DNA of 47,162 bases from Cyanophora paradoxa CCMP329 (taxonomy: Eukaryota > Plantae > Glaucophyta): the NCBI GenBank assembly GCA_004431415.1, contig QPMI01000317.1, positions 1-47,162 of the forward strand, in the 5' to 3' direction. The notes below the pieces were generated by a model. It saw only the letters and a list, made by a program, of their open reading frames with translations, made no database searches and was not told the DNA's origin. The position numbers were made by a program, and so were the translations under genes. Of this stretch, positions 8,268 to 33,138 are shown piece after piece; position 1 is the stretch's first letter; the number at the start of each line of letters is the position of its first letter.

Positions 8268-8347
8268 TAGGGTTGCCACTTACGGCGTAAGTCCCCCAAA
8301 CCCCGCCGTAAGTGTAAGTGTAAGTGTAAGTGTAAGTCGTAAGTCCC
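8268..8347 (+). mobile_element. hAT-like terminus (TAGGGTTGCCAC...) with subterminal (GTAAGT)n repeats
   Basis: About 80 bp are the reverse complement of 36612-36709. TAGGGTTGCCA resembles hAT/Blackjack-type ends (recalled, not searched). Confidence 0.6.
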
Positions 8348-8964: not shown

Positions 8965-10968
8965 GGTGAGGTCGCAGTCGGTGAGGTCGCAGTCGGTGAG
9001 GTCGAAGCCGCGTGAGCGGCGCTCGGAAGAGGACGAGCGGCGCTCGGAAGAGGTCGAAGCCGCGTGAGCGGCGCTCGGAAGCCGCGGTGAGGTCGAGAGG
9101 CGCGAGCCGGAAGAGGTGGGTGGAGGGGCACGCACGGCGAAGGCGTGGCGGAGGGCGGCGCAGGAGCGGCCCTGGAGCCTGCCGCGCGACGTCCCCAGGA
9201 TCAGGAAGCGTTGAGAGGAAGGAAGGCGAGGCGAAGCCCAGAAAGAAAGAAAGAAAGCTTAGGGATAGGTTTCGGATTGAGAAAGGAAGCTTGGATTAGA
9301 AGAGTTAGAAGCAAAGGAAGCTTAGGACTAGGATTCGGATCAAGAGAGGAAGCTTGAAACTAGGATTCGGATCGAGAAAGGAAGCTAGCTCGGGCTGGGA
9401 CCTGTTGTGGGAGAGGTCTAGGGACTGTAGCGCCTCGTTGTCGCGGAGGGCGGGGCCCAGCGCCTGGCCCTCCACGTACGCGTCCGAGAGCCCGTTCCAC
9501 GCCAGGTTCAGCGAGGTTAAGCCCTCGTTGCTGCCGAGCGACCTGTGGTGGGGTTGGTTAAGAGGCGTAGAGAGGGGATAGGATAGGGCCTACGCGAGGA
9601 GGGCGGCGGCGAGATGGCCTAAGGTGGCTTAGGTGTGGCGGTAGAGAGAGGATAGCGTGTGTGGCTTAGGTGTGGCTTAGAGTAGACTTGAGAGGGCGGG
9701 GCGGGGGGCGGGTGGCGGGGGGCGTACGCGAGGAGGGCGGCGGCGGCGCAGCCGCGGATCTTGTTCCAGGACAGGTCCAGGTCCTGGAGCGTCCCGTTCT
9801 GCAGCAGGGCCCGCGCCAGAGCCAGCGCCTCCGTCTCGTTCACCCTGCCCAGGGTGCTGTGAGCCGGCGCCGCCGGGCCGAGGCGGCGGCGGCGGGGTGG
9901 ATGGATGGTTGGTGGCAGAACTGGGAGGCTCTAGGGGAGCTCAGAGCGCAGGCCTCTAGGGGGAACTAGGGGCGCGGGCCCGACTGCGCGGCGTCCGGGG
10001 CGAGCGGGCGGGGGCGGGGGGGCGCACTGGTTGCGGGAGGAGTCGAGGGCCGTGAGGGACGTGTTGGCGTAGAGGCCCCCGCACAGCGTCCGCACCGCCG
10101 CCCCCGTCAGCTGTCCAGATCTAGACCCCCGTCAGCCTCTACGGAATGGAAGGAAGGAAGGAAGGAATTCGAAGGAAGGCGCGTGTGAAATCTATGCGCA
10201 GGAGCCGGCGCCGGCGCGCGCGCGCTCGCCTTGTTCTCGGTGAGCTTGAGGGTGGCGAGGCGGCAGGCGGGGTGGGAGAGGGCGGCGGCGAGGGCCCCGC
10301 AGCCCTCCGGATCCGTCCCCAGCTGGTTCGACGAGAGGTCCAGCACCCGGGCGGGGGCGAGTGCGGGTGCGGGCCTAAGTCGGGCGATGCTCTAGATCTA
10401 GAGACGCCCTCGGAACGCTAGCGCTCAAGGGCAGGGCCGGGGGCGGGGTCGGGGGCCGGGGCCGGGGGCGGGGGCGGGCCTCGGCGATGGCGAGGGAGCC
10501 CTCGGTGCCGATGCGGTTCTCCCGCAGCCGCAGCTCCTCCACCTGCCGCGGGCCGGGGCGGGGCCAGGGTCGGGGGCGGGCCGGGGCCGAGGTCGGGGGC
10601 GGGGCCATGGCCAGCTGCAGGCCTAGGGTCAGCCAACGACGACGAGCACGCGAGCTGGGGCGGCCTTGGCGTTAGGGGCGGACCTTGGCGCCGCCGTCCT
10701 TTATAACTTATTCGCTTATTATCAACCTCGCGATCGGCTTCTTATTAACTTATCAAGAGGGTTCCCATCAAAAGGGCCCCCATTAAGGCCGAGGGGCGGC
10801 GCGGGGGGCGGCGGGCGGCGGGCGGACCTTTGCGCCGCCGTCCTGGACGCTGTGGGCGACGCCGCGAGGGCCCGCGACGGCGCGGGACATGACTCATGTC
10901 ACATGACGTCCCCCAGCGAGCTCGATCGCGAGAAGTGCGACAGGTCCAGCGTGATCCGCGTCCTGCGG
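8965..10968 (-). pseudogene. Partial, intron-containing duplicate of the LRR gene (about 7 exons)
   Basis: Collinear with 42545-44885 (RITLDLSHFS, VEELRLRENRIGTEG, LDLSSNQLG, LDLSWNKI, LDLTDCDL). It lacks both ends, has a stop in the 10880-10900 insertion and has lost the ANESLVELNL exon. Confidence 0.9.
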
Positions 10969-10994
10969 GGCGGAAAACCACCGTACGCGTGGCA

Positions 10995-13900
10995 CGTGCA
11001 CCTGACTCAGTGATCATGATGAGCCTGACTCGGAGCTCGAGTGTGACTCCTGCAACTTAAGCTTGCAAGTTGCCAAGTTGGCAGTGTACGTTCAACTTGG
11101 CACGCCGCACGCGCATATGCATGCGGCGCCATGCGCATGTGCGCACGTGCACGGTGCACCAGCCTGCCATGATCATGAGGAAAACCATCGATATCATGGG
11201 ATGCATATGAGTCTGCTGCTCGACTCAGTGACTCCTGCAGCAGAATCCTGCTGAGTCCTGCAACTTGGCAAGCTTTTAAGTTGGCATTGTTCGATGATTG
11301 TTGGCAACTTAGTGGCAATGGCAATTGCAAGCTCCATCATTCATCATTCATGCCATATGCATGCATATGATGATCACGACTTGCGAGTTATTTTTTGGAA
11401 ATTTCTACAGTGAATTCGAATTCGAACTTCGAAGTTGTTTTTGAATCACTCCGATTCACTCGCCGTCGAGTCGCCGTCGAGTACTAGTCGGCGTCGACTC
11501 GCCGAGCTCGACTCTGCTGCTCGAGGCCCGAGACTCGGGCCGAGAGACCCGAGCCGCGAGTGACCCGAGTGACCCGCGAGTCACGCGACCCGAGAGTCCG
11601 ACGGTCGGCGACGGTCGCCGGCGCCGCGGCCGGTCCCGGGGACCCTCGAGCTCGGGAGTCGGGAATCGGGATGCATTCATGACTTGCGATCTAGGTTTTC
11701 GAAATTCGAATTCGGACCGTTTTCCGGCCGTTTTCAGAGTTTTCTTCAGCAAATCACAAATCAAGCTTGACTTTTTCCGGTCCGATTTTTTCCCCATTCC
11801 CAGCCCTGCGATTGGTCGGCCATTCCCAGCCCTGCGATTGGTTATCACAGGCTCTAACCGGCCTGCTGACCACGCGAGCGGCGAGCCGGCTCGCGATCGA
11901 GCAAGCCTGACAAGCCGGCGCCGGCTCGTAAGTTAAAAAGAGTCGTAAGGGACTCGTAAGAGTCGTAACTAACTTAGAACACACGTGCTCTCTCAGAGCC
12001 TAGATCTCTAGATCTCTGCGGCTCTGCCAGGCTGGTGGCACACTGGCACCGTGGCAGACCGTGCCACGGTGGAGCCTGCGGGCCAGGCTGCGGCCCGTAG
12101 CCTGCCAGGCTGGGCCGTAGGCTGCGGGCCTGCGACCCTGCGCGCAGCTGCGCGCGCATGCGGCGGCATTGCGGGAATTTGCGGCCGCGGGCCCGCCGGG
12201 CCGCCGCCGGCCCGCCGGGGCCGGCGGCGCGGGCGCGCGGCGAGTCGGCGGAGTCGCCGGCGACTCCGAGCCTAGAGGCGAAGTACGTTACGCGTGAACA
12301 GTGAACTTTCAAGTTTAAATTTGCTTCCGATTCAGAAGTTCCGAACTTCAAAAAGGCTTCGGAAGTTCGGAATTCAAAGCAATTTCGAATTCGGAAGTTC
12401 ACGTTTTTCCGCGGGCCCGATCGACTCGGCGAGCGCGCGCGGCGCGCGCCACGGTGCGCGCGGCGCCGTGCTGCCACGGTGCTGCCAGGCTGGCACGGTG
12501 CGCATGGGCGGCATGGCTCGGCAATGAGAGTCGGCACTGCGGCATTGGCTCCGCATGCTGCTCCGAGCCTGCTCGACGGTGCTCGCTGCATACCGTAGAC
12601 TCCGTAGTACGTAGCGTCGTACGCATCGGACCGCCGTCGGTTTGGAGTCTTCGCCGAGTTCGGCCTATAGACTATAGTTGAAACCGTTTTTTGAACGTTA
12701 ACTGTAGGCCTGAGGACCAGCGCGCGCGCGCGCTAGCGCAAGGTCCTAACTTTGACCCCAAATTTTAAGGCCGCCGCCAGTTGCAGCCTTGCAGGCTAGT
12801 GCTTTCCCCGACCCGGAGACCGGCGCTGCAGCGGCGTATACGTACGCGCGCGTATACGCACGCTTACGCGCGGGAGTTGTGCATGCCGTCGGCGTCTGCA
12901 GAAATGTGCAGGGAAAACTACTCCAGCGCCGCCGGCGCCGCCGGCGGCCTCAGCGGCCTCTTGAGGCTTCTGCTCAGCGAGCGCGGCGCCGGCCCCACCA
13001 AAGTCGAGTCGGAGAACGATATCGATTGCGTCTCCCGCTTCGGCACTGCCGCTGGTGCGAGCTCGAGGCTCGCGCGGCTCTCGAAAGCACTCGCCGCGCC
13101 GCGCCGGCGGATGCCCGGCCCCGACTTCGATTTGTCTGACCGTCGGACGCCGCGCGCAGGCGGGAGGGACGGCGCGGTGGGCCACCTTCCGGCGCTGCCG
13201 AAGACGGCCATCGTGTGCCGGCCAGACGACGAGCTCGCAATCGCCCGCCTCAAGGTCGACCTGCGGGAGGCGCTCGCGACAGTGATCAGCCTCGACGACG
13301 ACTGCGACAGCGACTGGACCTCCCCGTGCACCTCCGCCGCCGTCTCTCCGACGGCCACTCCGCTGCCCGGCCTGAAAGTCAACGTCAACGCCAACTCCGG
13401 ATCGATATCCCCACGCGACTCCGCCGCCGGCGCCCTGCCGCCCCTTCGAAAGCCCGCGCGCCACGGCTCCCTCCCCGGGCTCTCCCGGGTGCCCCTCCTG
13501 GTCCCCGTCAGCGGCTCGCGCCCCGCCTCCCCTGTCCGATTCGTCGCCCACCGCGGCCCCGCCCATCCAAACACGCGTGCGCCCTGGCCGCCCCCCGCCC
13601 CCCGCCCCCCTCCCCCCCCCCCCCCCCCCCCCCCCCCATCCGAGCCTGCTCCATGCGCAATTAAACTTGCACCGGCCTCTGATCCGTCCCGGCCTCCGGA
13701 TCCCGCAGCCGTGCATGCCCGCCTCTGCGCGCTCCCTTCCAAATCAGCATCCGCGCCGGCCAGCGCTTCGCACCTTGGATGCGCCTGCCACATTAACGTC
13801 CTCCTCGCCGGTAAGCCTTCCGAATTTTTCGATGTTCCCCCCTTCAAATTCAAAATCCATTAGATTTGCGGACGGCCTCTGATATATATTTGAATTTCGA

Positions 13901-15150
13901 TTGGCGCAGATGACTGCCCCCTGAACCGTATGCTCGGGGCTCGCGTCTTCACCTCCTATTGCCCGCACGCCCGCGTGGACGTCGTCAGCGACGGACAGGT
14001 GCCGGACGGCCACTCTCCGCGCGCCTTGGAGCGAGAGTGACTGACCGTCGGACCGCCGCCGGCGCCGCGCGCAGGCGGCCGTCACTGCTTTTGAGGAGGC
14101 GGCGGAGCGCGGGCAGCCGTACGACGCGTGCATACTCGACATCGAGGCGAGCGCGGCCCGATCGCGATTAATATTCGAAGAATCTCTTTGCTTTTCCGCC
14201 CCGCTGACGCTGCGCCGCATTGCCGCCCGCAGATGCCGCACAAGAACGGGCTCGAGGCGGCTCGGGAGATCCGGAGGCTGGAGCGGGCCCAGAGGCGGGC
14301 GCGCCCTGCCCGCCTCCTCGCGTGGTCGACATCCACGCGGCTGTGCGGAGAGACGGGGACCGCAGTCGATCGCGAGCCCGACTGCCACGACGCCGGCTTC
14401 TCTTCGACGTGCCCCAAGCCGGTGCAGCCGGTGGTGCTCCTGCGCGCGGCACTCGCGGGGCTCCAGCACGACCCGGCGTGCCCGCTCGCCCCGGCGACCC
14501 CCAATTGCAAGCCCCGCAGCGGGCCCCTCGCCCCGCTCCGCCCCCACGGGCTCGCCGGCGCCCCTTTAAATTTGCCTGCGACTTCGTCATCGCTGTCCGC
14601 CCAGCTTCGGATGTGAGCGGGTGCCTTGCGATCGGCGCACCCACCGGGCCAGCGCCGTGAGGGGTTCTGATACTCTGAGCCTCGGAGCTTTTTCGCTGCT
14701 GCATAATCTGCGATCGCGAGTCCTTTGAAGCTTTTTCCACCACCTCTAAAGAAATTAAATCGGTACAGATCGGCATCGTCGTAGCTGCATAAATCAAATC
14801 GGCACAGATCGACATCTTCGTAGCTGCATAAATTAAACAATCTTTATCTAATAGATAGATTTGAGTTTTCACCGAGTTTCGAGCCTGCCAGGCCCTGAGG
14901 ATGAGTTTCGTTGCGAGAATGAGCTTGAAAATTCAATCGGCTTTTCGGGCCTCTCTGGGCCCTTTCCCAGGCGTTGGCGCCTGTTTCGGTGTCAGCCTTA
15001 GAAAATAATCAAGTAATCTTTCGTACATAATCTTTCACATGTAAGTTTACTTCACGTACTTTACGCAGTACCCTGATAAAGACAGTGACAGTACATTTCA
15101 TAGCACGTAGAACTGCAGTAGATAATTATATAACGTCGAACTCATGATTA
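10995..15150 (+). repeat. Segmental duplication, copy 1 (~4.2 kb), carrying the REC gene
   Basis: 10995-11500 matches 15960-16824; 11500-11840 matches 29292-29550; 12300-15150 matches 30300-30400 plus 30990-33673. Homology ends at gtcgaactcatgatta in both copies. Confidence 0.85.
12883..14616 (+). CDS. Response regulator: Pro/Ser-rich N-terminus plus receiver (REC/CheY-like) domain, copy A
   Basis: Exons 12883-13576, 13709-13810, 13910-13998, 14075-14146 and 14233-14616 splice in frame to INVLLADDCPLNRMLGARVF...VDVVSDGQAAV...YDACILDIEMPHKNGLEAAREIR...LLAWST...AGFSSTCPKPV. The acidic pair, phosphoacceptor D, S/T and K are all present. The start codon is uncertain. Confidence 0.88.
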
Positions 15151-15806
15151 GCTATAGTTGCTATAGCTAGCTTTCAGATTTAAAAGCCGTGCCAGTCGGT
15201 CCGACGATTCAATGATTCCCCAATGCACTTAATGGATCACTATCTTATATTTAGTTTCGGTAGAGCGCCCGGCCCACCAGCGGTTTTACTCTGCAGGCTG
15301 CTGATTCCGGATCCTGCGCGCGTGCATGCACGAATATTAATCACTGAATGTTCTTACATAATTAAGCTCGAGCATCGATTTGTAACCCTGGGTCCTCGCA
15401 GTATAACCCGGAGTCCTCGCAGTATACATTCGAATTCTCGGCCACTGAGCTCATGCACGTGTAGGACAGCCGGGACGTCGACGCACCCCTCCGCACCGAC
15501 GTTAACACGCGGACGCTGCGCGGGCGGTTCGAATTCGAATTCCTCGGGCAGCGAGGACCCGTCCGATCGATGTTAGCTAGGCAGTACTGCAGTACTGCAG
15601 TACTGCTTGCTGCCAGAGCTAGCGCTAGAGGCGCTGGCCGGGCGTGGAGGTCGCCCGTAGGCTGATTGAGAGCTAGCGCTAAAGGGGGGTGGGGGGTGGG
15701 GGTGGGGTGGCCATGGGGGGTGGGGGGTGGGGGGCCGGGGGGGGGGGGGGGGGGGAGGGGGGGGGGGGGGCCGCCGATTGCAATTGCCACAGGGTATACG
15801 TAGCTA

Positions 15807-15935
15807 TAGGGTTGCCACAGACTCCACGTGCACAGTGCCACTTACGACTTACGTATATATATATATATATATACAGCATTACGTGGAATTCGAAGTCCGT
15901 AAGTTTAATTTAAGTCGCGACTTACAACTTACGCG
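15807..15935 (+). mobile_element. Decayed third hAT-like terminus
   Basis: tagggttgccac followed by ccacttacgacttacg and gacttacaacttacg motifs. Confidence 0.4.
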
Positions 15936-17238
15936 CCCCCGGATGGGACTCACTGCCGTAAGGTGTACCTGATGAGCCTGACTCGGACTCCCGGGAGCTC
16001 GAGTGTGATGACTCCTGCCAGGCTGAGGAGTCAGGACTCAGGAGTCAGGACTCTCCGGTCTCTCGTCGTGCACACGACGTGCAGCAGCCTGAGCAGAGTC
16101 AGGAGTCAGGGAACTCACTGAGTCAGCCTCACTCAGGGCCTGCAACTCAGTGACTTAAGCTTGCAACTTGCAAGTTGGCAGTGCATGTTGCAAGTTGGCA
16201 CGCGCATGCGCACGTGCACCGTGCACGGTGCACCAGCTGCAGCCAGGCTGCCAGACCAGTGCCAGTGTGCCACCACTGGGCCAGCCTGCGCAGGCTGCGC
16301 CACCAGTGGCCCACCAGCCTGCTGGCCCAGTGCTAGCGCTGGCCCACTGCGCATGCGCATGCTGGGCCATGAGGAAAACCGTGGGTCTGCTGCTCGACTT
16401 CTGCACGTGCACGGTGCACCGTGCACCAGCCTGCCATGCGGCCCATGCCATGCCAGGATGATCATGAGGAAAACCATCATGGGATGAGTCTGCTGCAGTG
16501 CTGCTCGACTCCTGCAGCAGAGTCTTAATCTTGCTGAGTCCTGCAAGCTTTTAAGTTGGCATTGTTCGATGATTGTTGGCAACTTAGTTGCAATGGCAAC
16601 TGCAAGCTTTGTTGAAGCAAGTGACGAGATTCATCATTCATGCCACATGGATAATGATGACGACTTAGCCTGCGAGTTAGTTTTCTTGGAATTTTCGAAT
16701 TCTACGTAGTAGTACGGTAGTACGTATACAGCGAAACTGAGCGAATTCGAATTTCGAAGTTGTTTTCGAATCACAAATCGAGCTTTATCGACTCGCCGAG
16801 TCGCCGTCGACTCGGCGTCGACTCCACTGGGAGACACCGGTGGTTGTTACCCCGGGGTAAACTTGAACATGTTACCCCGGGGCAAAAGAATGCCGTTTGT
16901 ATTGCCCCGGGGCAACAAGTTCAAGTTTACCCCGGGGTAACAACATCGTCAGCCAATCAGATTCGTTTGCAACTGGCTCACGGGATCACGTGAACGACTC
17001 TGATTGGTTGTTTTTTTATCTTTTTTCCCAAAATGCGATTGATTTTTTGGGATCTGCCAATCGTGTTCTTCTTATTGAAAAACAATCCAATCACAGAGCT
17101 AGCTAGCCACATATATACAACTAGCTAACGCTACTACTACTGTTACGCTAGCCATTGTAGCCAAGTACATAGCTAGCTGCTAGCTATCTAGCTACGGTAG
17201 TAGCTACTAGCTACTAGCTACTACTAGTATACTATACT

Positions 17239-18905
17239 AGGGGCGCGAGCACCTGTTTCCGGGCAGATGATGCTTATGCACGCCCTGCCGCAGTGCTGGA
17301 GACGCCAAAAGCGATGGTCAGCCCCAGAGCAAGGAGCGGAAAGCGGAACCTATAGCTAACACCTACAGGCCCAGCCGGCAGCCCCGCTCGCTCGCTCACC
17401 TCCGAGCAGCGGGGCCGCCAGCAGACCCCACCACTCGGTCAACTCCGAGCGGCAGGGCCAGCCGAACTGCGCTATTGAAAAGGAGGGGCGCAAGAACCTC
17501 TTTCTGGGCCGATGATGTTTTTGCACGCCCTGCTGCAGACGCCAAAAGCGATGATCAGCCCCAGAGCAAGAAGAAGTGGAACCTATACCTATAGCTAACA
17601 CCTACAGGCCCAGCCGGCAGCCCCGCTCGCTCGCTCACCTCCGAGCAGCGGGGCCGCCAGCAGACCCCACCACTCGGTCAACTCCGAGCGGCAGGGCCAG
17701 CCGAACTGCGCTATTGAAAAGGAGGGGCGCAAGAACCTCTTTCTGGGCCGATGATGTTTTTGCACGCCCTGCTGCAGACGCCAAAAGCGATGGTCAGCCC
17801 CAGAGCAAGAAGAAGTGGAACCTATACCTATAGCTAACACCTACAGGCCCAGCCGGCAGCCCCGCTCGCTCGCTCACCTCCGAGCAGCGGGGCCGCCAGC
17901 AGACCCCACCACTCGGTCAACTCCGAGCGGCAGGGCCAGCCGAAGTGCGCTATCGAAAAGGAGGGGCGCGAGCACCTGTTTCCGGGCCGATGATGCTTAT
18001 GCACGCCCTGCTGGAGACGCCAAAAGCGATGGTCAGCCCCAGAGCAAGAAGAAGTGGAACCTATACCTATAGCTAACACCTACAGGCCCAGCCGGCAGCC
18101 CCGCTCGCTCGCTCACCTCCGAGCAGCGGGGCCGCCAGCAGACCCCACCACTCGGTCAACTCCGAGCAGCAGGGCCAGCCGAACTGCGCTATCGAAAAGG
18201 AGGGGCGCAAGAACCTCTTTCTGGGCCGATGATGCTTTTGCAAGCCCTACTGCAGACGCCAAAAGCGATGGTCAGCCCCAGAGCAAGGAGCGGAAAGTGG
18301 AACCTATAGCTAAAACCTACAGGCCCAGCCGGCAGCCCCGCTCGCTCGCTCACCTCCGAGCAGCGGGGCCGCCAGCAGACCCCACCACTCGGTCAACTCC
18401 GAGCGGCAGGGCCAGCCGAACTGCGCTATTGAAAAGGAGGGGCGCAAGAACCTCTTTCTGGGCCGATGATGTTTTTGCACGCCCTGCTGCAGACGCCAAA
18501 AGCGATGGTCAGCCCCAGAGCAAGAAGAAGTGGAACCTATACCTATAGCTAACACCTACAGGCCCAGCCGGCAGCCCCGCTCGCTCGCTCACCTCCGAGC
18601 AGCGGGGCCGCCAGCAGACCCCACCACTCGGTCAACTCCGAGCGGCAGGGCCAGCCGAACTGCGCTATTGAAAAGGAGGGGCGCAAGAACCTCTTTCTGG
18701 GCCGATGATGTTTTTGCACGCCCTGCTGCAGACGCCAAAAGCGATGGTCAGCCCCAGAGCAAGAAGAAGTGGAACCTATACCTATAGCTAACACCTACAG
18801 GCCCAGCCGGCAGCCCCGCTCGCTCGCTCACCTCCGAGCAGCGGGGCCGCCAGCAGACCCCACCACTCGGTCAACTCCGAGCGGCAGGGCCAGCCGAAGT
18901 GCGCT
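17239..18905. repeat. 239/237-bp tandem array, about 7 units, inside the CACTA element
   Basis: Recurring ORFs at 17356, 17595, 17834, 18310 and 18549 give a 239-bp period with one 237-bp unit. Confidence 0.97.
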
Positions 18906-20039
18906 TCCAAAAAGAAGAGGACTGCGAACCTTGATGGCGGAACCTACGAAGAATCCCTTGATGGCGCGCGAGCATTCCTGCCGCGAGAAGTAAGCAGACG
19001 AAAGAAGCCATCCAACAGCAAGAGCGGCCGCGGAAGGGCTGGGCCGGGCACGCGCGCGGCCCCTCGCGCGTTCTGGGCGCGCGCGACCGCGGAAGGGCTG
19101 GGCACGAATCCCAGCGCGTTAAAAGATCTGCATGATTTGCATAAGCAAGCTGATGCAGAGCAGTAGACTATCGTGCGACGCGCGCGGCACAATGACCATC
19201 GGCAACGTCATCGTCGCACGATGGTTGGCCGCTCGTCGCAACAGTCGCAGTTGAAGGCAGTGGTAGATGCGCTGACGCGTTAAAAGGCGTGGCGCTGCGC
19301 TGCGCTGGCCAGATGCGCAGCTAAGAAGAGGAAATTTGAAATCTAAGGAGAGGAGGCGCCGGCCAGCATGCCAGAGGAATGCTCACGAACCTGCAGAAAG
19401 GGCCTGGAACCGAGGCGTCGCCCCAAAGGGCTGGTGGCTCGCTGCAACAACCTACTGCAGAGCATGTATCCCCCCAATCCTCCCCCCCCCCTCCGCCCCC
19501 GGCGGCCTACGGTAGCATAGCTTCGGCCTTGCGCCGCAACAGTCGCTGCAGATCAGCTGCAGAGGAAGCGGGGCGCGCTTGCCCTTAGCGAGGTGCACCG
19601 CGCGCCCGAGCAGAGTGCCGCGAGGCTGACGGTGTGAGCTTGCAGCGAGTGCCGCGGGGCTGACGATGTAACGAAGATGTGAGCTTGCAAGCTTGCAGCG
19701 CAGTTCGCTGGATTGGCCGCGGGCCGACGTCAGCCCGAGCGCCGCCGCCCGGCCGCCATTCAACACTTGCTTTGGGTGCGTCGCCCGAGCCTCGGGGCAG
19801 GGCTGCGTAGCTGCGGATTGCAATCAGATTGCTTGCGATGCGATCAATCACAATCGACGAGCTTCTGTGAAGGTACGGCATGGGGGCCGATCGGCCGCCT
19901 GGGCGCCGCCCGAGCCTCGGGGCGGATCGGGCGCGGCCGCGGGCGGGGCGGGTGCAATCATTGCTTATCATGTGAGCCTCGGTGCAGGTTGCGCTGGCGC
20001 CCGCCGCGCCCCAGCCCACCCCGCCCCGGCGGGGCGGCA

Positions 20040-21000
20040 AGGCGCTGCTCGCTGCTCGAGCGAGGCGCTACGTCGCTGCCCCCCGCGCCCCGGCCCGCCC
20101 CGTCAGCTCCTCCCCCGCCCTCCTCTCCTCCTCCAGCGGCGGGGCGGCACGGCGCTGCTCGCGGCGGCCGAGCGAGGCGCTACGTCGCTGCCCCCCGCGC
20201 CCCGGCCCGCCCCGTCAGCTCCTCCCCCGCCCTCCTCTCCTCCTCCAGCGGCGGGGCGGCACGGCGCTGCTCGCGGCGGCCGAGCGAGGCGCTACGCCGC
20301 TGCCCCCGCGCCCCGGCCCGCCCCGTCGGCTCCTCCCCCGCCCTCCTCTCCTCCTCCAGCGGCGGGGCGGAACGGTGCTGCTCGCGGCGGCCGAGCGAGG
20401 CGCTACGCCGCTGCCCCCGCGCCCGGCCCGCCCCGTCGGCTCCTCCCCCGCCCTCCTCTCCTCCTCCAGCGGCGGGCGGCACGGCGCTGCTCGCGGCGGC
20501 CGAGCGAGGCGCTACGCCGCTGCCCCCCGCGCCCGGCCCGCCCCGTCGGCTCCTCCCCGCCCTCCTCTCCTCCTCCAGCGGCGGGCGGCACGGCGCTGCT
20601 CGCGGCGGCCGAGCGAGGCGCTACGCCGCTGCCCCCGCGCCCCGGCCCGCCCCGTCGGCTCCTCCCCGCCCTCCTCTCCTCCAGTGGCGGGCGGCACGGC
20701 GCTGCTCGCGGCGGCCGAGCGAGGCGCTACGTCGCTGCCCCCGCGCCCCGGCCCGCCCCGTCGGCTCCTCCCCGCCCTCCTCTCCTCCTCCAGCGGCGGG
20801 GCGGCACGGCGCTGCTCGCGGCGGCCGAGCGAGGCGCTACGCCGCTGCCCCCCGCGCCCCGGCCCGCCCCGTCGGCTCCTCCCCCGCACTCCTCTCCTCC
20901 TCCAGCGGCGGGGCGGCACGGCGCTGCTCGCTGCTCGAGCGAGGCACTACGCCGCTGCCCCCCGCGCCCCGGCCCGCCCCGTCGGCTCCTCCCCCGCCGG
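20040..21000. repeat. ~110-bp GC-rich minisatellite, about 8.5 units
   Basis: Unit ggcgctgctcgcggcggccgagcgaggcgctacg...cctcctctcctcctccagcggcggggcggcac recurs at 20041, 20151, 20263 and onward. Confidence 0.95.
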
Positions 21001-21675: not shown

Positions 21676-22436
21676 GTCACACAAGACAGTCCGCTGAGGA
21701 CCGACTGCACCTGCGCCCGCCCTGCTACACGCGGCCAGGGCGTCGCGGCCACGCAACCGCGCGACCAGCCCTGATGCTTGTGTGAGCCCCTTCGCAGCAG
21801 GGCAGTGAGACGGTGGCGTGAGGCGCGGCGGAGAGGCAATGCGCGGCGGTACCTTCCAGCTGACCACAGACAGCCCGAGCGGCCCGCTCCTTCTTAGCTA
21901 CGTCACGCCTAAAGCACTAAGATCGCGATGGAGCAGCTCCGCCATGGCAGAATTGCGGTCGATGCGTGCTGCCCCGAAAAAGGGCGCTCCTGGGCGCTTC
22001 CGGCGGTCAGATCGCTTCTCACCGATAGCTGCGCACTTCGAGCCAGTCGGAGCGGTGCTCAGATGCAAGCAGGATGGCCTAAAGTTCAGGATATCTTGTA
22101 CCCCCAGCCAGTACACCCCCCTCTCTCGGAAACGGCGCGCGGAAACAGGATCGAGTCTGCAGCTGTTTGACAATTATAATTGCAAGAGCGCGGAGCCAGT
22201 GGAACCTTACTTGTCCGCCATCAAGAGGGATGCTAAGGGAATACCAAGGTTGCTCACGTGCACCAAAATCTGCCCTACACGTACAGTACTAGTAGCTCAG
22301 GCCTGGCTCTCAAGCTTAAGGCTGAATGTGTGCAGGGGTCCCGTGTGCCTAAGTAAGCTTTTTATATGCCCAGAATCATGACTGCAAAGCCCTAGGCAGA
22401 GAGCTAGGCATTGTTTCCTTCGGTTCCCAGCCAAGC
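21556..22436 (+). repeat. Left arm of an ~880-bp inverted repeat
   Basis: Reverse complement of 26849-27732; ORFs are mirrored (21898-22173 minus = 27114-27389 plus). Confidence 0.97.
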
Positions 22437-25400
22437 TTGCTGGAAAAAGAGCCATATCTTTGCAGGTACTTCTCAGCTGGGGCTGCAGTTCAGCTCTTGC
22501 ATTCCCTGATTAGTCCTCATGATGAAGGTCAAGTTAGGATCCAGTGGCTCAGCGCTTCTGTCAGGCAGAATTCTTGACTCGGTGCATGAGTGACGTGGTG
22601 CCTTCAGTGTCACGTGAAGGAGCAAAACAAGGCCTGGTATCATATGTGTTCCCACATTTACGTCTTTGAAAAGTGCCTTGAGCTTGTGTGCATGTTCACT
22701 AAGCATGCAGCGGCACTGATTCCAGAAACGTTGCTGGAGGAGCTCCAGCAAGGCCACTTACCAGCTAACGCGATCACGCCAAAATCAGCCCTACAGCAGC
22801 TCAGGCCTGGCTCTCAAGACCGAAGGGGTCCTGTGTACCTAAGTAAGCTTTTTATATGCCCAGAATCATGACTGCAAAGCCCTAGGCAGAGAGCTAGGCA
22901 TTGTTTCCTTCTGTTCGCAGCCCAGCTTGCTGGAAAAATAGCCATATCTTTGCAGGTACTTCTCAGCTGGGGCTGCAGTTCAGCTCTTGCATTCCCTGAT
23001 TAGTCCTCATGATGAAGGGCAAGTTAGGATCCAGTGGCTCAGCGCTTCTGTCAGGCAGAATTCTTGACTCGGTGCATGAGTGACGTGGTGCCTTCAGTGT
23101 CACGTAAAGGAGCAAAACAAGGCCTGGTATCATATGTGTTCCCACATTTACGTCTTTGAAAAGTGCCTTGAGCTTGTGTGCATGTTCACTAAGCATGCAG
23201 CGGCACTGATTCCAGAAACGTTGCTGGAGGAGCTCCAGCAAGGCCACTTACCAGCTAACGCGATCACGCCAAAATCAGCCCTACAGCAGCTCAGGCCTGG
23301 CTCTCAAGACCGAAGGGGTCCTGTGTACCTAAGTAAGCTTTTTATATGCCCAGAATCATGACTGCAAAGCCCTAGGCAGAGAGCTAGGCATTGTTTCCTT
23401 CTGTTCGCAGCCCAGCTTGCTGGAAAAAGAGCCATATCTTTGCAGGTACTTCTCAGCTGGGGCTGCAGTTCAGCTCTTGCATTCCCTGATTAGTCCTCAT
23501 GATGAAGGTTAAGTTAGGATCCAGTGGCTCAGCGCTTCTGTCAGGCAGAACTCTTGACTCGGTGCATGAGTGACGTGGTGCCTTCAGTGTCACGTAAAGG
23601 AGCAAAACAAGGCCTGGTATCATATGTGTTCCCACATTTACGTCTTTGAAAAGTGCCTTGAGCTTGTGTGCATGTTCACTAAGCATGCAGCGGCACTGAT
23701 TCCAGAAACGTTGCTGGAGGAGCTCCAGCAAGGCCACTTACCAGCTAACGCGATCACGCCAAAATCAGCCCTACAGCAGCTCAGGCCTGGCTCTCAAGAC
23801 CGAAGGGGTCCTGTGTACCTAAGTAAGCTTTTCATATGCCCAGAATCATGACTGCAAAGCCCTAGGCAGAGAGCTAGGCATTGTTTCCTTCTGTTCGCAG
23901 CCCAGCTTGCTGGAAAAAGAGCCATATCTTTGCAGGTACTTCTCAGCTGGGGCTGCAGTTCAGCTCTTGCATTCCCTGATTAGTCCTCATGATGAAGGTC
24001 AAGTTAGGATCCAGTGGCTCAGCGCTTCTGTCAGGCAGAATTCTTGACTCGGTGCATGAGTGACGTGGTGCCTTCAGTGTCACGTGAAGGAGCAAAACAA
24101 GGCCTGGTATCATATGTGTTCCCACATTTACGTCTTTGAAAAGTGCCTTGAGCTTGTGTGCATGTTCACTAAGCATGCAGCGGCACTGATTCCAGAAACG
24201 TTGCTGGAGGAGCTCCAGCAAGGCCACTTACCAGCTAACGCGATCACGCCAAAATCAGCCCTACAGCAGCTCAGGCCTGGCTCTCAAGACCGAAGGGGTC
24301 CTGTGTACCTAAGTAAGCTTTTCATATGCCCAGAATCATGACTGCAAAGCCCTAGGCAGAGAGCTTGGCATTGTTTCCTTCGGTTCCCAGCCAAGCTTGC
24401 TGGAAAAAGAGCCATATCTTTGCAGGTACTTCTCAGCTGGGGCTGCAGTTCAGCTCTTGCATTCCCTGATTAGTCCTCATGATGAGGGTCAAGTTAGGAT
24501 CCAGTGGCTCAGCGCTTCTGTCAGGCAGAATTCTTGACTCGGTGCATGAGTGACGTGGTGCCTTCAGTGTCACGTAAAGGAGCAAAACAAGGCCTGGTAT
24601 CATATGTGTTCCCACATTTACGTCTTTGAAAAGTGCCTTGAGCTTGTGTGCATGTTCACTAAGCATGCAGCGGCACTGATTCCAGAAACGTTGCTGGAGG
24701 AGCTCCAGCAAGGCCACTTACCAGCTAACGCGATCACGCCAAAATCAGCCCTACAGCAGCTCAGGCCTGGCTCTCAAGACCGAAGGGGTCCTTTGTACCT
24801 AAGTAAGCTTTTTATATGCCCAGAATCATGACTGCAAAGCCCTAGGCAGAGAGCTTGGCATTGTTTCCTTCTGTTCGCAGCCCAGCTTGCTGGAAAAAGA
24901 GCCATATCTTTGCAGGTACTTCTCAGCTGGGGCTGCAGTTCAGCTCTTGCATTCCCTGATTAGTCCTCATGATGAGGGTCAAGTTAGGATCCAGTGGCTC
25001 AGCGCTTCTGTCAGGCAGAATTCTTGACTCGGTGCATGAGTGACGTGGTGCCTTCAGTGTCATGTAAAGGAGCAAAACAAGGCCTGGTATCATATGTGTT
25101 CCCACATTTACGTCTTTGAAAAGTGCCTTGAGCTTGTGTGCATGTTCACTAAGCATGCAGCGGCACTGATTCCAGAAACGTTGCTGGAGGAGCTCCAGCA
25201 AGGCCACTTACCAGCTAACGCGATCACGCCAAAATCAGCCCTACAGCAGCTCAGGCCTGGCTCTCAAGACCGAAGGGGTCCTGTGTACCTAAGTAAGCTT
25301 TTTATATGCCCAGAATCATGACTGCAAAGCCCTAGGCAGAGAGCTAGGCATTGTTTCCTTCTGTTCGCAGCCCAGCTTGCTGGAAAAAGAGCCATATCTT

Positions 25401-26840
25401 TGCAGGTACTTCTCAGCTGGGGCTGCAGTTCAGCTCTTGCATTCCCTGATTAGTCCTCATGATGAGGGTCAAGTTAGGATCCAGTGGCTCAGCGCTTCTG
25501 TCAGGCAGAATTCTTGACTCGGTGCATGAGTGACGTGGTGCCTTCAGTGTCACGTAAAGGAGCAAAACAAGGCCTGGTATCATATGTGTTCCCACATTTA
25601 CGTCTTTGAAAAGTGCCTTGAGCTTGTGTGCATGTTCACTAAGCATGCAGCGGCACTGATTCCAGAAACGTTGCTGGAGGAGCTCCAGCAAGGCCACTTA
25701 CCAGCTAACGCGATCACGCCAAAATCAGCCCTACAGCAGCTCAGGCCTGGCTCTCAAGACCGAAGGGGTCCTGTGTACCTAAGTAAGCTTTTTATATGCC
25801 CAGAATCATGACTGCAAAGCCCTAGGCAGAGAGCTAGGCATTGTTTCCTTCTGTTCGCAGCCCAGCTTGCTGGAAAAAGAGCCATATCTTTGCAGGTACT
25901 TCTCAGCTGGGGCTGCAGTTCAGCTCTTGCATTCCCTGATTAGTCCTCTTGATGAAGGTCAAGTTAGGATCCAGTGGCTCAGCGCTTCTGTCAGGCAGAA
26001 TTCTTGACTCGGTGCATGAGTGACGTGGTGCCTTCAGTGTCACGTAAAGGAGCAAAACAAGGCCTGGTATCATATGTGTTCCCACATTTACGTCTTTGAA
26101 AAGTGCCTTGAGCTTGTGTGCATGTTCACTAAGCATGCAGCGGCACTGATTCCAGAAACGTTGCTGGAGGAGCTCCAGCAAGGCCACTTACCAGCTAACG
26201 CGATCACGCCAAAATCAGCCCTACAGCAGCTCAGGCCTGGCTCTCAAGACCGAAGGGGTCCTGTGTACCTAAGTAAGCTTTTTATATGCCCAGAATCATG
26301 ACTGCAAAGCCCTAGGCAGAGAGCTAGGCATTGTTTCCTTCTGTTCGCAGCCCAGCTTGCTGGAAAAAGAGCCATATCTTTGCAGGTACTTCTCAGCTGG
26401 GGCTGCAGTTCAGCTCTTGCATTCCCTGATTAGTCCTCTTGATGAAGGTCAAGTTAGGATCCAGTGGCTCAGCGCTTCTGTCAGGCAGAATTCTTGACTC
26501 GGTGCATGAGTGACGTGGTGCCTTCAGTGTCACGTAAAGGAGCAAAACAAGGCCTGGTATCATATGTGTTCCCACATTTACGTCTTTGAAAAGTGCCTTG
26601 AGCTTGTGTGCATGTTCACTAAGCATGCAGCGGCACTGATTCCAGAAACGTTGCTGGAGGAGCTCCAGCAAGGCCACTTACCAGCTAACGCGATCACGCC
26701 AAAATCAGCCCTACAGCAGCTCAGGCCTGGCTCTCAAGACCGAAGGGGTCCTGTGTACCTAAGTAAGCTTTTTATATGCCCAGAATCATGACTGCAAAGC
26801 CCTAGGCAGAGAGCTAGGGATTGTTTCCTTCAGTTCCAGC
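22334..26840. repeat. 490-bp tandem array, about 9.2 near-identical units
   Basis: The same ORFs recur exactly every 490 bp (22473, 22963 ... 26393). Confidence 0.99.
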
Positions 26841-26848
26841 AAAGTCAT

Positions 26849-27732
26849 GCTTGGCTGGGAACCGAAGGAAACAATGCCTAGCTCTCTGCCTAGGGCTTTG
26901 CAGTCATGAATCTGGCCATATAGAAAGCTTACTTAGGCACACGGGACCCCTGCACACATGCAGCCTTAAGCTTGAGAGCCAGGCCTGAGCTACTGTACGT
27001 ATACGTGTATAGGGCAGATTTTGGTGCACGTGAGCAACCTTGGTATTCCCTTAGCATCCCTCTTGATGGCGGACAAGTAAGGTTCCACTGGCTCCGCGCT
27101 CTTGCAATTATAATTGTCAAACAGCTGCAGACTCGATCCTGTTTCCGCGCGCCGTTTCCGAGAGAGGGGGGTGTACTGGCTGGGGGTACAAGATATCCTG
27201 AACTTTAGGCCATCCTGCTTGCATCTGAGCACCGCTCCGACTGGCTCGAAGTGCGCAGCTATCGGTGAGAAGCGATCTGACCGCCGGAAGCGCCCAGGAG
27301 CGCCCTTTTTCGGGGCAGCACGCATCGACCGCAATTCTGCCATGGCGGAGCTGCTCCATCGCGATCTTAGTGCTTTAGGCGTGACGTAGCTAAGAAGGAG
27401 CGGGCCGCTCGGGGCTGTCTGTGGTCAGCTGGAAGGTACCGCCGCGCATTGCCTCTCCGCCGCGCCTCACGCCACCGTCTCACTGCCCTGCTGCGAAGGG
27501 GCTCACACAAGCATCAGGGCTGGTCGCGCGGTTGCGTGGCCGCGACGCCCTGGCCGCGTGTAGCAGGGCGGGCGCAGGTGCAGTCGGTCCTCAGCGGACT
27601 GTCTTGTGTGACCTAACGTGCTTCATACAGGATCGTAAGATGCTGGAAGGTCTCGTGGATGGTCGGCGTCCTCGCCTGCGCACGATGATGAGGTCCGTCC
27701 ACTGCACCCTCCCGCTCGGCAGCCAGCGACCA
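26849..27732 (-). repeat. Right arm of the ~880-bp inverted repeat
   Basis: Reverse complement of 21556-22436. Confidence 0.97.
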
Positions 27733-29598
27733 GCAGCCAGCGCTTAGCCAGTTGTGATGCGTGCCACTCGCAGGACACGATGCGCCGCTTCTCGGCCGTG
27801 CACTCTCGGTTGGAATCACAGCCCCTCAGGAGTCGCCGTGGTGCGGCCCGCGGGCGCGACCTTTTGCCTCCTTTCCTGAGCCCGGCTCTGATGCTATCTG
27901 CATGCAGACATTGCGTGTGCATTGTGTGGCGCTTCGGATCGCGCGTTTTTGACCGAGCACGCCACCGTACCGGGTCCCTTCTTCTGGGCCAGATGTTGCT
28001 CCTCTCCGTCGCTCTCCGCGTCTCCCTTGGATAGTGAGTCATCGAGATAGCCATGTGCAATCAATCCACGCGTTTTCCCGTTGCCCCCGTCTCAGTGGTA
28101 GGTGCCACTGCAGTACCACTCTCGCATAGGCGCCCTGCGCGCCCAGCACGCCCGCGGCACTGGAGATGAATAAAGCCGATGCGAATTACATCGAAGCACA
28201 TCAGAGCACAATCCAACGTGTCCACTGAGCGCGGGCAAAGGGTCCGAGCGTGATCCCAAGTCCTTGCCACCACCACCGTCAGCGACCGAACGCAGCAGGG
28301 CACCCTGCACAGCATGCAAGCGGTGCGCAACAGAGTTAGCCTTGCATAAGAGCGCAGCTGGCGCGGGGTTCAGCCAGGATGCGCACCGGGAGCGACCAGC
28401 ACCAGGGGCGCAGCGGCCACCAAGCCAGTCAACGCGGCGGAACCACCCAGTGCGCCCCGCGTAAGCTGTTGATATAGGCGATGCTGCGCGTGAGCTGCGA
28501 GCGTCGGACGAGGTCGCGGTTGGTCGCTGGCTGCCGAGCGGGCGGGTGCAGTGGACGGACCTCATCATCGTGCGCAGGCGAGGACGCCGACCATCCACGA
28601 GACCTTCCAGCGTCTTACGATCCTGTCTGAAGCACGTTAGGCCCGCGCAGCTAGAGCCCCGACGGCGCACCCGAGCCTTGGAGCGATGTCAGCTGTTGCG
28701 CCCACGCTGCGACGGTGGCCGCTGCGACGGTGGCCGCCGGGTGGCGGCCCCGGTGGCCGGGTGACCGCCCGGTGGCGGCGTGGCGGCGGTGGCGGCGTGG
28801 CGCGCCCGGGGGGGTACGGTACGACTTTCAAGGCGTCAGCGATCGGCCGGCCGGCGACCCCCAGCGCGTTTCCTGCACATCTACGTGCACCGCACAGCTA
28901 GATCGAAGCCTTCAACCGGCCCGGCGGCGTCGCCAGCGGCACTAGTTGCGGCTGCGCTCGTTGCAGCGACCGTCGCTAGCATATGTGCGCATGCTTTGTG
29001 TTGTAATGATCTACTGTGACGTTTGGGCGTGTCTGCGCAGCCCGCGCGCAGCCCGGGAGCCGCGCTCAGGGGCGCTCGAAGCACGCCACGGGATCTCGCC
29101 AGGGACGCAAGCAGGCCATCGGCTCGTAACGGATTCTATCTAGATATGCAAAACATAGCACATCTACGCGCTCTCAGCGCTCCACGGCGAGGTTTTCCTA
29201 GAGGGGGTAACAACAAGGGGGTAAAATCGGCCCAAAAGGTGTAAACTCGAAGTCGTTACCCCGGGGTAACAACACTTCGTGGCTACCAGTGCTCGCCGAG
29301 GCCCGAGAGTCGAGACTCGAGCCGAGAGAGTCGAGACTCGAGCCGAGAGAGTCGGAGAGACCCGACCGGTACCCGAGAGTCGGCGTCGACTCGCCGAGTC
29401 GAGTTCCCGGGCCGGCCCGGGAATTCCCGGAAAAGTGGACCCGGTCGCCCGACCGAATGGGACGTCGACTTTTCCGGCCCATTTGTTCGTTATCTCATTG
29501 GTCAGCCCGGGCCCCGGGGCCATTCCCAGCCCTGCGATATCGACCAATGGTCACACGGTCTCAGACCGTGCGCCACATCATATGCATGCCCACATGTA

Positions 29599-29761
29599 TC
29601 GTGTAACACTTAATTAATGCGCCAGAAATTAATGCGTTTTTGGACCCGGCCCCCTAGTATTGATAATAATGCGGCACCGAATTAATGCGTTTTGCCAGCC
29701 AAAAACGTATTAATTAGGGACCGCATTACTTAAGTGCGCGCATTACTTAAGTGTTACACGG
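29599..29761. mobile_element. CCGT-ended Tc1/mariner-type MITE, related to 6953-7210, TA TSD
   Basis: TA|tcgtgtaacacttaattaatgcgc ... gcgcattacttaagtgttacacgg|TA. Shares aatgcgtttttggacccgg with the 6953 element. Confidence 0.82.
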
Positions 29762-30411
29762 TACTGTGCCACGGTGATGTACATGTACCGTAGTACATGC
29801 CATGATGTACAAGCCTTTGAAGTACTTTGATCACTGTCATTCACTGATCACTGCGATGGATCACTGATATCGAATCATATTTAATTGACATATTATCGTG
29901 TCGAACCGAATTCGAAATTCGAATGTCCGACGGTCGACGTCGGAGCTTCGACATGTCGGCCCGACGGTACGGTAATTACACTGTGACAACCCTATACTAC
30001 GTAGTACGTACTAGACTACTACTAGTGCTCTCAGCCAGTCGACGTCACTGATTGACAGGCTGACAGCCAGTGACAGGCAGTGACAGGCACGTGCACTGAC
30101 AGCCACTGCTGCCGCATTAAAACTTTTGAAAATTGCTGCGTGACAGGCTGCAGCCTGCAGGCTGCAGCTGACAGCCTGACACTAGTACTGTACTAGGCCG
30201 CGGCCCGCCGGGCCGGCGGGCGGCGACTCCGGCGCTCCGCCGGCCGGGCGCCGGCGCCGGCGAGCCACCGAACTTTGAATTCCGTAAGTTCGGAACTCCG
30301 AGCTCGAGGCCGGCCGCCGAGGTACGCCTGAACTTACAGGTTTGCCAAGTTGCTTCCGAACTTTAAAGGCTTGGAAGTAGTACGAACTTACTACGAAGTA
30401 CCGTAGTACTA

Positions 30412-30985
30412 CTGTCAGACAGTGTCAGTTCATTATGTTAGACGTCGCCTTTGTTAGACGTTTGCAGCCCGCGCGCGATAGACGTGGTCAATGATAGACG
30501 AGCTTGGTACCGCTGCTATGAGGCATTACTATGGTAGCGCCCCGGCCCGTCTACGACGGTGACTGAGGCCGAAAACCGGATACGCTAGAGACGGTACTTT
30601 CTCAAGTCCCTCAATGCAAAAGAGCTGGTACTTTTTAACGACCGAAGGGGCCATGACATCATTTTTTTGGCACTTGGTCGCTTCGGTCGTTGGGCCCCTG
30701 ACGCGGTTGCCATAGTAACCGCGTCAAAATTTTGAGCTCATCGCCTTGGTGACTGTTCGTGGAATCGAGCTCGATTCCAAGTCTCCACATTCCATGCTAG
30801 GACCCGGCAAAGACCCGAACACTCAAGTCCCGAGTTCGGAAAGAGACTTGGATAACCACCGAATCGGCCGGTATCCGGTTTTCGGCCTGAGTCTACGACC
30901 TGTTATGATGGTTTTAGTTAGACGAATCAGCTCGCTCGTCTATACTCGTCTAACTAAGAATCCGTCTAACATAATGAACTGACAG
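30412..30985. mobile_element. ~575-bp MITE with TA flanks
   Basis: TIR tgtcagttcattatgttagacg (30423) / cgtctaacataatgaactgaca (30963-30984). Absent from paralogous copy 1 at about 12360. Confidence 0.8.
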
Positions 30986-31446
30986 TAGTTCGGATTCTTT
31001 TCACCTTCGGAAATTCATCGGAATTCAAAGCATTTCCGAATTCGGAAGTTAACGTTTTACCGGTACCGCGGACCCGCGCGCGCGCGCGCGCGCGGCGCCG
31101 TGCACGTGCTGGCAGCCTGGCACGGTGCGCATGCTGCTCGACGGTGCTCCTTGTATTATAAGTTGTATACCGTAGCACGCATACGTAGCCTCGAGCTCGT
31201 ACGCGTCGGGTTGGAGTCTTCGGCCTAGTATAGTTGAAACGTTCGCTGTAGCGCTAGCCTGTAGGCCTGAGCTCGAGGACCAGCGCGCGCTAGCGGAAGG
31301 TCCTACGGACTCCTACCTTTGACCCCTAATTATAAGGCCGCCAGTTGCAGCCTTGCAGGCTAGTGCTTTCCCCGACCCGGAGACCGGCGCTGCAGCGGCG
31401 TATACGTACGCGCGCGTACACGCACGCTTACGCGCGGGAGTTGTGC

Positions 31447-33138
31447 ATGCCGTCGGTGTCGACGTCTGCAGAAATGTGCAGGGAAAACTACTCCAGCGCC
31501 GCCGGCGCCGCCGGCGGCCTCAGCGGCCTCGTGGGGCTTCTGCTCAGCGAGCGCGGCCCCACCAAAGTCGAGTCGGAGAACGATTGCGTCTCCCGCCTCG
31601 GCTCTGCCGCTGGTGCGAGGCTCGCGCGGCTCTCGAAAGCACTCGCCGCGCCGGCGGATGCCCCGACTTTGATTTGTCTGACCGTCGGACGCTGCGCGCA
31701 GGCGGGAAGGACGGCGCGGCGGGCCACCTTCCGGCTCTGCCGAAGACGGCCATCGTGTGCCGGCCGGACGACGAGCACGCGATCGCGCGCCTCCGGGTCG
31801 ACCTGCGGGAGGCGCTCGCGACAGTGATCAGCCTCGACGACGACTGCGACAGCGACTGGAGCTCCCCGCGCACCTCCGCCGCCGTCTCTCCGACGGCCAC
31901 TCCGCTGCCCGGCTTGAAAGTCAACGTCAACGCCAACTCCGGATCGATATCCCCACGCGACTCCGCCGCCCTGCCGCCCCTTCGAAAGCCCGCGCGCCAC
32001 GGCTCCCTCCCCGGGCTCTCCCGGGTGCCCCTCCTGGTGCCCGTCAGCGGCTCGCGCCCCGCCTCCCCTGTCCGATTCGTCGCCCACCGCGGCCCCGCCC
32101 GTCCAAACACGCGTGCGCCCTGGCCCCCCCCCCCCCCCCCCTCCTCCATGCGCACTTAAACTTGCACCGGCCTCTGATCCGTCCCGGCCTCCGGATCCCG
32201 CAGCCGTGCATGCCCGCCTCTGCGCGCTCCCTTCCAAATCAGCATCCGCGCCGGCCAGCGCTTCGCACCTCGGATGCGCCTGCCACATGAACGTCCTCCT
32301 CGCCGGTCAGCCTTCCGAATTTTTCGAATTTCCCCCCATTAAACTTTGAAAATTCAAAATCCTTTAATTTTGCGGACGGCCTCTGATCATCGGATATATA
32401 TATATTTGAATTCCGCTTGACGCAGATGACTGCCCCCTGAACCGTATGCTCGGGGCTCGCGTCTTCACCTCCTATTGCCCGCACGCCCGCGTGGACGTCG
32501 TCAGCGACGGACAGGTGCCGAACGGCCCCTCTCCGCGCGCCTTGGAGCGAGAGCGACTGACCGTCGGACCGCCGCCGGCGCCGCGCGCAGGCGGCCGTCA
32601 CTGCTTTTGAGGAGGCGGCGGAGCGCGGGCAGCCGTACGACGCGTGCATACTCGACATCGAGGCGAGCGCGGCCCGATCGCGATTAATATTCGAAGAATC
32701 TCTTTGCTTTTCCGCCCCGCTGACGCTGCGCCGCATTGCCGCCCGCAGATGCCGCACAAGAACGGGCTCGAGGCGGCTCGGGAGATCCGGAGGCTGGAGC
32801 GGGCCCAGAGGCGGGCGCGCCCTGCCCGCCTCCTCGCGTGGTCGACATCCACGCGGCTGTGCGGAGAGACGGGGACCGCAGTCGATCGCGAGCCCGACTG
32901 CCACGACGCCGGCTTCTCTTCGACGTGCCCCAAGCCGGTGCAGCCGGTGGTGCTCCTGCGCGCGGCACTCGCGGGGCTCCAGCACGACCCGGCGTGCCCG
33001 CTCGCCCCGGCGACGTCGACCCCCAATTGCAAGCCCCGCAGCGGGCCCCTCGCCCCGCTAGCGCTCCGCCCCCACGGGCTCGCCCCTTTAAATTTGCCTG
33101 CGACTTCGTCGTCGCTGTCCGCCCAGCTTCGGATGTGA
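31447..33138 (+). CDS. Response regulator, copy B; REC exons intact, but exon 1 is frame-shifted relative to copy A (possible pseudogene or different start)
   Basis: Same exon structure and REC residues as copy A. It is 10 nt shorter than A around 31645-31665. Confidence 0.75.

Follow-up and report, generated by a model that had tools for sequence, protein, structure and literature searches.

Uniform six-base insertions in a Cyanophora paradoxa contig have the structure of hairpin excision footprints

What kind of process could insert the same form of six-base sequence, again and again, into the DNA of a glaucophyte? The question is raised by Cyanophora paradoxa contig QPMI01000317.1, of which 47,162 nt were examined (the window). 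At many sites in this DNA, a triplet present once in one copy of a duplicated sequence is found in the other copy followed by its reverse complement and then by the triplet again. Writing W for the triplet and rc(W) for its reverse complement, we refer to W-rc(W)-W as +6, and to two related forms, W-C-rc(W)-G-W and W-CG-W, as +8 and +5. The feature is real and works like a hairpin excision footprint. We assign a probability of roughly three in four to the reading that each +6 is the scar of a transposon whose target-site duplication (TSD) measures 3 bp and which inserted, was excised via hairpins formed on its flanks, and left ends that were rejoined by complementary 3-nt overhangs.

The window is eukaryotic, has a G+C content of 63% and contains introns of the GT-AG and GC-AG types. 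Two open reading frames (ORFs) match the EukProt models tig00001327_g8246 and g8244, and the paralogue tig00000145_g8858 has a receiver (REC) domain. The C. paradoxa assembly (Canu/Augustus, 712 contigs) is probably haploid (PMC6704402). Genes were compared exon by exon, and the core alignment of the two REC gene copies paired 12788-15148 with 31352-33671. The sequences and events compared are as follows.

12884-14570, forward strand: REC gene copy A (model tig00001327_g8246), with +6 at 12985, 13018, 13426 and 14554 (exonic) and at 13059 (intron), and +5 at 13092 and 13113 (intron); events at 13401, 14367 and 14502 are also in copy B
31269-33095, forward strand: REC gene copy B, with +6 at 31269 (5' flank), 31458, 33012 and 33057, and +8 (W = GAT) at about 32385 in an intron
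9088-10970, reverse strand: decayed leucine-rich repeat (LRR) gene fragment, with +6 at 9475, 10306, 10391 and 10417 and a nested pair at 10916-10931
42830-44900, reverse strand: LRR gene copy without the insertions of the fragment (pre-event state)
22285-22293, unstranded: +6 (W = AGT) within a transposon (element B, described below), on the left arm of an inverted duplication
26996-27004, unstranded: +6 with W = TAC/GTA, in the right arm of the same duplication
7862-7870, unstranded: +6 with W = GTT, in a single copy of a dispersed repeat and absent from most of the others

All 13 nine-base motifs reported in the initial annotation are present, each opposite a single triplet in the partner copy, although at 31458 the partner also differs by one neighbouring C/T. 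The nine events attributed to the REC pair are likewise real, but the one at 31269 falls in the looser 5' flank and the core alignment contains eight of the nine. Additional +6 events were identified at 7862, 10391, 10417, 11187, 11201, 11480 and 22312, along with the nested double event in the LRR fragment. That fragment also has a 14-nt insertion relative to the LRR gene (10887-10900), made up of C, a 7-nt inverted copy of the left flank and a 6-nt repeat; this may be the footprint of an element with a long TSD or the product of a template switch. Where 16800-16812 aligns to 11474-11492, the paralogue has AGT-ACT-AGT and the copy beside element B has the inverted triplet ACT rather than AGT, by either a point change or an in-place flip.

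Clean indels of at least 3 nt between paralogues within the window number 26, and 14 of these are 6 nt long. Twelve are exact W-rc(W)-W motifs and one more fits if an adjacent single-nucleotide polymorphism is allowed (13 of 14); a random 6-nt deletion would fall on the motif 2.7% of the time. The 6-nt insertion is the commonest length change between duplicated genes in the window. Motif enrichment was measured in the 35 kb outside arrays and second copies, with local order-1/2 Markov shuffles as background. Non-overlapping W-rc(W)-W motifs occur 200 times (19-21 expected), and the mirror control, W-reverse(W)-W, is near background (18 vs 12-13). The motif count as a whole is put at 200-225, with about 20 expected. 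With units of 2 nt the count is 202 (131-142 expected), with 4 nt it is 9 (1-2 expected), and units of 5 nt or longer give two motifs altogether. The large excess is confined to the 3-nt unit. Motifs with a 4-nt unit are mostly nested arrays of the 3-nt form and were not retained as a class of their own. Thus, the 6-bp peak and the motif enrichment that had been proposed as a check are both found, within the window. Versions with one mismatch are also in excess (881 vs about 490), from which it follows that the process is old as well as recent.

The motifs do not derive from the assembly. Illumina-based Logan contigs of four public runs agree with the window across intervals having 62 +6 and 10 +8 motifs; none of the contig pieces listed has a differing letter, and the single gap lies in one contig end. 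Reproduction by independent runs excludes long-read or assembly error. In run X18, a contig with one gap terminates at 6451.

The +6 events are net insertions, as had been claimed. Three independent polarisations agree on this, because the outgroup REC paralogue, the LRR spacing and the other copies of the repeat at 7862 all lack the insert. The third REC paralogue, P0002, is without the extra two residues at all seven exonic polymorphic sites, of which 31458, 12985, 13018, 13426, 33012 and 33057 were compared directly and 14554 only in a shifted frame. It also lacks the two residues at 13401, 14367 and 14502, where copies A and B share the event. The LRR gene has canonical repeat spacing, and this spacing is interrupted by the two exonic events of the fragment. 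At 7862, contigs without the six letters account for 572.5 of a summed depth of 607.8 in run X18, and the remainder is the window's own contig (depth 35.3); these depths imply about 16 repeat copies without the insert and one with it. Comparison of 12884-14570 with P0002 suggests that two more two-residue insertions common to copies A and B (KV and ST pairs) are decayed scars, each altered by one CpG-type change.

The single +6 grammar described in the initial annotation holds, but a separate class with fixed C and G had been overlooked. A scan of W-a-rc(W)-b-W over all single spacers gave one further peak, at a = C and b = G (46 vs 3.2). Polymorphic +8 events were identified at 11261 and at about 32385. 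Forms with one spacer base (+7) do not exceed their controls in enrichment, which makes +6 and +8 discrete classes; +7 was dropped as a class. The fixed C and G of the +8 class point to at least two cleavage chemistries.

The load is high. Between the REC copies, nine +6, two +5 and one +8 events (12 in all) compare with 43 substitutions over about 2.3 kb, and scars have added 72 bases. Expressed as the share of bases in excess through scars, the load is 8-14% in four spacers, 5% in the LRR fragment, about 1% in the LRR gene, and about 0% both in the GC-rich stretch at 38200-41500 and in much of element B's interior. Scars are about a tenth of the DNA between genes in the window.

6250-9080, unstranded: scar-dense spacer with 33 +6 and 5 +8 motifs (about 8% of bases in excess)
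10980-12880, unstranded: scar-dense spacer with 30 +6 and 12 +8 (about 14%)
15150-16824, unstranded: scar-dense spacer with 30 +6 and 6 +8 (about 13%)
29292-31440, unstranded: scar-dense spacer with 25 +6 and 10 +8 (about 10%)
5056-5751, reverse strand: exon (low-complexity N-terminal region) of model g8244, where +6 motifs number seven and +8 motifs are absent

Only +6 motifs are present in exons, and the exon of g8244 illustrates this. The +5 and +8 events of the REC gene are intronic, and the +8 at 14043 lies beyond the exon end implied by P0001 and P0002. The +6 form persists in exons, where each event adds two amino acids, because the reading frame is kept.

Which enzyme could be responsible? 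The fixed 3-nt unit indicates an enzyme with a 3-nt stagger, and the inverted copy with zero loop indicates a covalent hairpin. The most likely source is a transposon of the CMCT clade (EnSpm/CACTA, Chapaev and Transib/RAG1-like elements, with CA..TG ends). Elements with CAC..GTG ends and a 3-bp TSD are typical of EnSpm, and the clade also includes Transib, the source of RAG1 (PMC12730594). Two elements with 3-bp TSDs had been noted in the window, and both exist (spans are given without the TSDs).

6460-6700, unstranded: element A, candidate donor type, a 241-bp miniature inverted-repeat transposable element (MITE) with CACAG ends, terminal inverted repeats (TIRs) matching at 16/16 and a 3-bp TSD (TAG)
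16825-29291, unstranded: element B, candidate donor type, 12.5 kb, non-autonomous, CACTG..CAGTG, TIR 11/13, 3-bp TSD (CTC)
11490-11515, forward strand: empty paralogue of the element B site, with CTC present once; it has its own +6 event at 11480

The empty paralogue verifies that the TSD of element B is 3 bp. Broad scans for TIRs with TSDs were swamped by chance matches in GC-rich DNA, and only near-perfect TIRs and a scan restricted to CAC..GTG were retained. The latter, which required a 3-bp TSD and a TIR of at least 10/13, identified only A and B in the window. Both have the CAC..GTG termini with short TIRs of EnSpm/CACTA elements, and B also has subterminal GTTACCCC-type repeats at both ends in both orientations. 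Element A ends in CACAG, not in strict CACTA or CACTG. Its copy number is roughly 40-100 as judged from contig depth, and its end had no match in metagenome contigs. The interior of element B consists of tandem arrays and duplications and is nearly scar-free. The arrays (17239-27732) have units of 239 bp, about 110 bp and 490 bp; also present are an 890-bp inverted duplication (21556-22439 and 26846-27732) and a 677-bp direct duplication (21000-21676 and 27967-28641). A Pfam scan of ten ORFs of element B gave no match, hence none to a TnpD/TNP2-type transposase, and neither A nor B showed a recognisable transposase.

In the proposed sequence of events, insertion of an element duplicates W, as is seen for element B. 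We infer the excision step, the nick position and the assignment of families to scar classes. Transposase would nick exactly at each 5' border, and the 3'-OH of the flank would attack the opposite strand, so that each flank becomes closed into a hairpin lacking any spacer base. Host nucleases would then cut the hairpins open some 3 nt beyond the tip; by the computed geometry, the resulting 3' tails would end in rc(W) on one side and in W on the other. Annealing of these complementary tails and fill-in would give W-rc(W)-W. For the +8 class, a second enzyme or mode may nick one base inside the element so that its terminal C is kept on each flank, giving W-C-rc(W)-G-W; if such retained-C hairpins were opened at the tip, the product would be W-CG-W. 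Scars accumulate in gene-proximal spacers.

The hairpin geometry proposed in the initial annotation does predict exactly the observed +6 product. When opening depths were enumerated at the two donor sites, terminal pairing was longest for W-rc(W)-W, which three combinations of depths produce; this convergence would account for the uniformity of the scars. With the first C of the element left on the flank, the same model gives W-C-rc(W)-G-W as the best-paired product. The scars are net insertions, both TSD copies are kept with inverted flank added, and elements with a TSD of equal length are resident. Target choice is also slightly biased. At 20 polymorphic sites picked by hand, C lies 5' of the triplet on either strand at 16 (p = 0.012) and CpG lies at a triplet edge at 11 (p = 0.0005), and the target sites of A and B both fit the looser C-5' rule. 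This weak bias suggests an enzyme, and it suits either a transposase preference or one extra base of microhomology.

Several points weigh against excision scars as the explanation. The bias was spotted only after the hand-picked sites had been inspected, and it is weaker across all motifs (49 of 193 vs 36 expected). Footprints of plant CACTA elements are heterogeneous, for example 3-5 bp for Tpn12, with no fixed +6 (10.64898/2026.08.24.746626); because those products are mixed, the uniform scars here call for host repair that depends strongly on microhomology. The load requires about 0.28 visits per point substitution. Most repeats in C. paradoxa are CpG-methylated (PMC12344493) and its repeat landscape shows little expansion (PMC6704402). 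So many visits are hard to square with repeat methylation, short of episodic activity or near-certain excision. Pfam scans of 30 window ORFs gave LRR only and no transposase. No excised allele of element A is among the 15 listed of 193 joints from contigs across 5700-11650, and contig assemblies lose rare variants. Polarity, the 6-bp peak, the CAC..GTG elements and the hairpin geometry support in part the earlier suggestion that the scars are excision footprints of 3-bp-TSD elements. With no excision allele among the joints listed and no recognisable transposase in B, elements A and B, and CACTA elements in the strict sense, are candidate makers.

The chemistry has precedents. Cleavage via flank hairpins is reported for hAT, Transib, RAG and MULE, and CACTA is not mentioned (PMC5499845); the earlier description of this route as established was borne out for hAT and too strong for CACTA. 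Footprints of hAT elements (Ac/Ds, Tam3, Ascot-1, Hermes) resemble the scars in being palindromic P-nucleotide additions at an empty donor site joined via terminal microhomology, which is found in 85-100% of Arabidopsis Ds excisions (PMC5873905). They differ in that the hAT TSD is 8 bp, the palindrome is centred on the complement of the base beside the element, and products are diverse, whereas the Cyanophora scars have a 3-bp unit, no lost flank base and one dominant product. V(D)J coding joints and Transib/RAG1 excision use the flank hairpin chemistry proposed here (PMC5499845). No RAG-like gene is present in the window. RAG nicks exactly at the CAC border, as a spacer-less +6 requires (element A starts with CACAG), but the Transib TSD is 5 bp and coding joints are deliberately diverse. 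Revertants of Volvox Jordan reportedly keep both TSD copies plus 3-9 extra bases, and the shortest would be +6. EnSpm/CACTA elements (Spm, Tam1, the Tpn1 family, Tdv1 and Jordan) share the CAC..GTG ends and 3-bp TSD (PMC12730594, PMC3193017) as well as short footprints. The known cases differ in involving single loci and mixed products of 3-5 bp (10.64898/2026.08.24.746626). Our literature search gave no report of the W-rc(W)-W signature and no genome in which scars are reported as a tenth of spacer DNA, and the Cyanophora genome paper does not mention palindromes (PMC6704402). Hairpin footprint chemistry has been described before, but such uniformity, a pair of fixed classes and a genome-scale load were not found in the literature searched.

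Could scars form with no resident element? A CMCT transposase, possibly RAG1-like or host-tamed, might insert and remove an end-bearing substrate within one cell cycle, or might cut target DNA. The very high ratio of scars to substitutions favours this. So do the many scars within exons of genes that look intact, since in a haploid an element residing there would be disruptive, but the clearest exonic cases sit in duplicated genes. From the geometry, resolving the strand-transfer intermediate before gap fill would flip W in place with length unchanged, yet complement transversions (9 of the 43 REC-pair substitutions) and in-place triplet inversions are not in excess. A +6 needs the duplication to be finished first, and that is ordinary insertion. 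We consider such visits quite unlikely, and keep them in consideration because of the missing excision alleles, the mixed plant CACTA footprints and the repeat methylation. It is unlikely that the scars come from this kind of transposase, or from a host system that channels almost all new insertions, on excision, into a single product that preserves the frame. In either case Cyanophora would possess a permanent mutational pathway defined by an enzyme, which would be its chief source of indels and would lengthen proteins by two residues at each insertion.

Routes that involve no transposon amount, taken together, to an outside chance. Replication template switching or polymerase-theta-like templated insertion could form micro inverted triplications, and short-range template switching has been documented to generate short inverted copies (PMC9435742). 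Such mutations share the direct-inverted-direct layout, palindromes of all arm lengths are somewhat enriched in the window, and there is one longer inverted copy (at 10887). Template-switch tracts vary in length and need local homology, whereas here the unit is fixed at 3 nt and +6 and +8 are discrete. The process gives no reason for the fixed triplet, the zero-length loop or a second class with invariant C and G. Moreover, of the 20 polymorphic sites checked, six offer no self-complementary dinucleotide at either edge that could guide a switch, and one other has lost its own through a later change. We regard this origin as highly unlikely. Still less probable is an undescribed host pathway in which a nuclease or topoisomerase-like enzyme makes 3-nt staggered breaks, perhaps aimed at CpG steps, that are filled in and sealed as hairpins. 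CpG-edge bias at recent sites would fit, CpG being the methylated context in C. paradoxa (PMC12344493), but the pathway calls for two unknown activities, both of them already available in a DDE transposase; the +8 class has a C..G that corresponds to transposon termini; and element interiors, methylated as a class by report, are scar-poor. Deletion by slippage between the two W copies over a small hairpin, for which direct repeats around a palindrome are a plausible substrate, or sequencing and assembly error, can be dismissed at the sites tested, given the three polarisations, the independent runs and a tenfold motif excess that deletion could not create.

Schwarz-Sommer and Saedler are said to have proposed in 1985 that transposon visits, and not only resident copies, create sequence diversity. 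Heterogeneous footprints have made such diversity difficult to quantify; here the grammar is fixed and the scars are countable. If they are excision scars, they would provide a readable record of past transposition and target choice, and an in vivo readout of where CMCT-clade enzymes cleave (at the exact border or one base inside). In-frame two-residue insertions would confuse alignment and indel models of glaucophyte genes. The window contributes outgroup polarisation in a coding gene, a ratio of events to substitutions, and a candidate donor with a verified 3-bp TSD.

Other repeats are present in the window. A 258-bp MITE with TA flanks (6953-7210) has 19/20 TIRs with CCGTAAAAC ends, is Tc1/mariner-like and, judged from depth, numbers about 80 copies; it has a diverged relative at about 29587-29763. 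A repeat starting TAGGGTTGCCAC, which resembles a hAT-type end, is found at 8258-8368, with further copies at 36612-36717 and 37545-37650 (inverted) and a decayed one near 15805. The first 980 nt of the window are a short-period tandem repeat of almost pure G+C (99%). A near-identical 773-bp direct duplication (99.7%) at 36457-38160 adjoins an inverted REC gene fragment (37230-37393) that is 99% identical to copy B.

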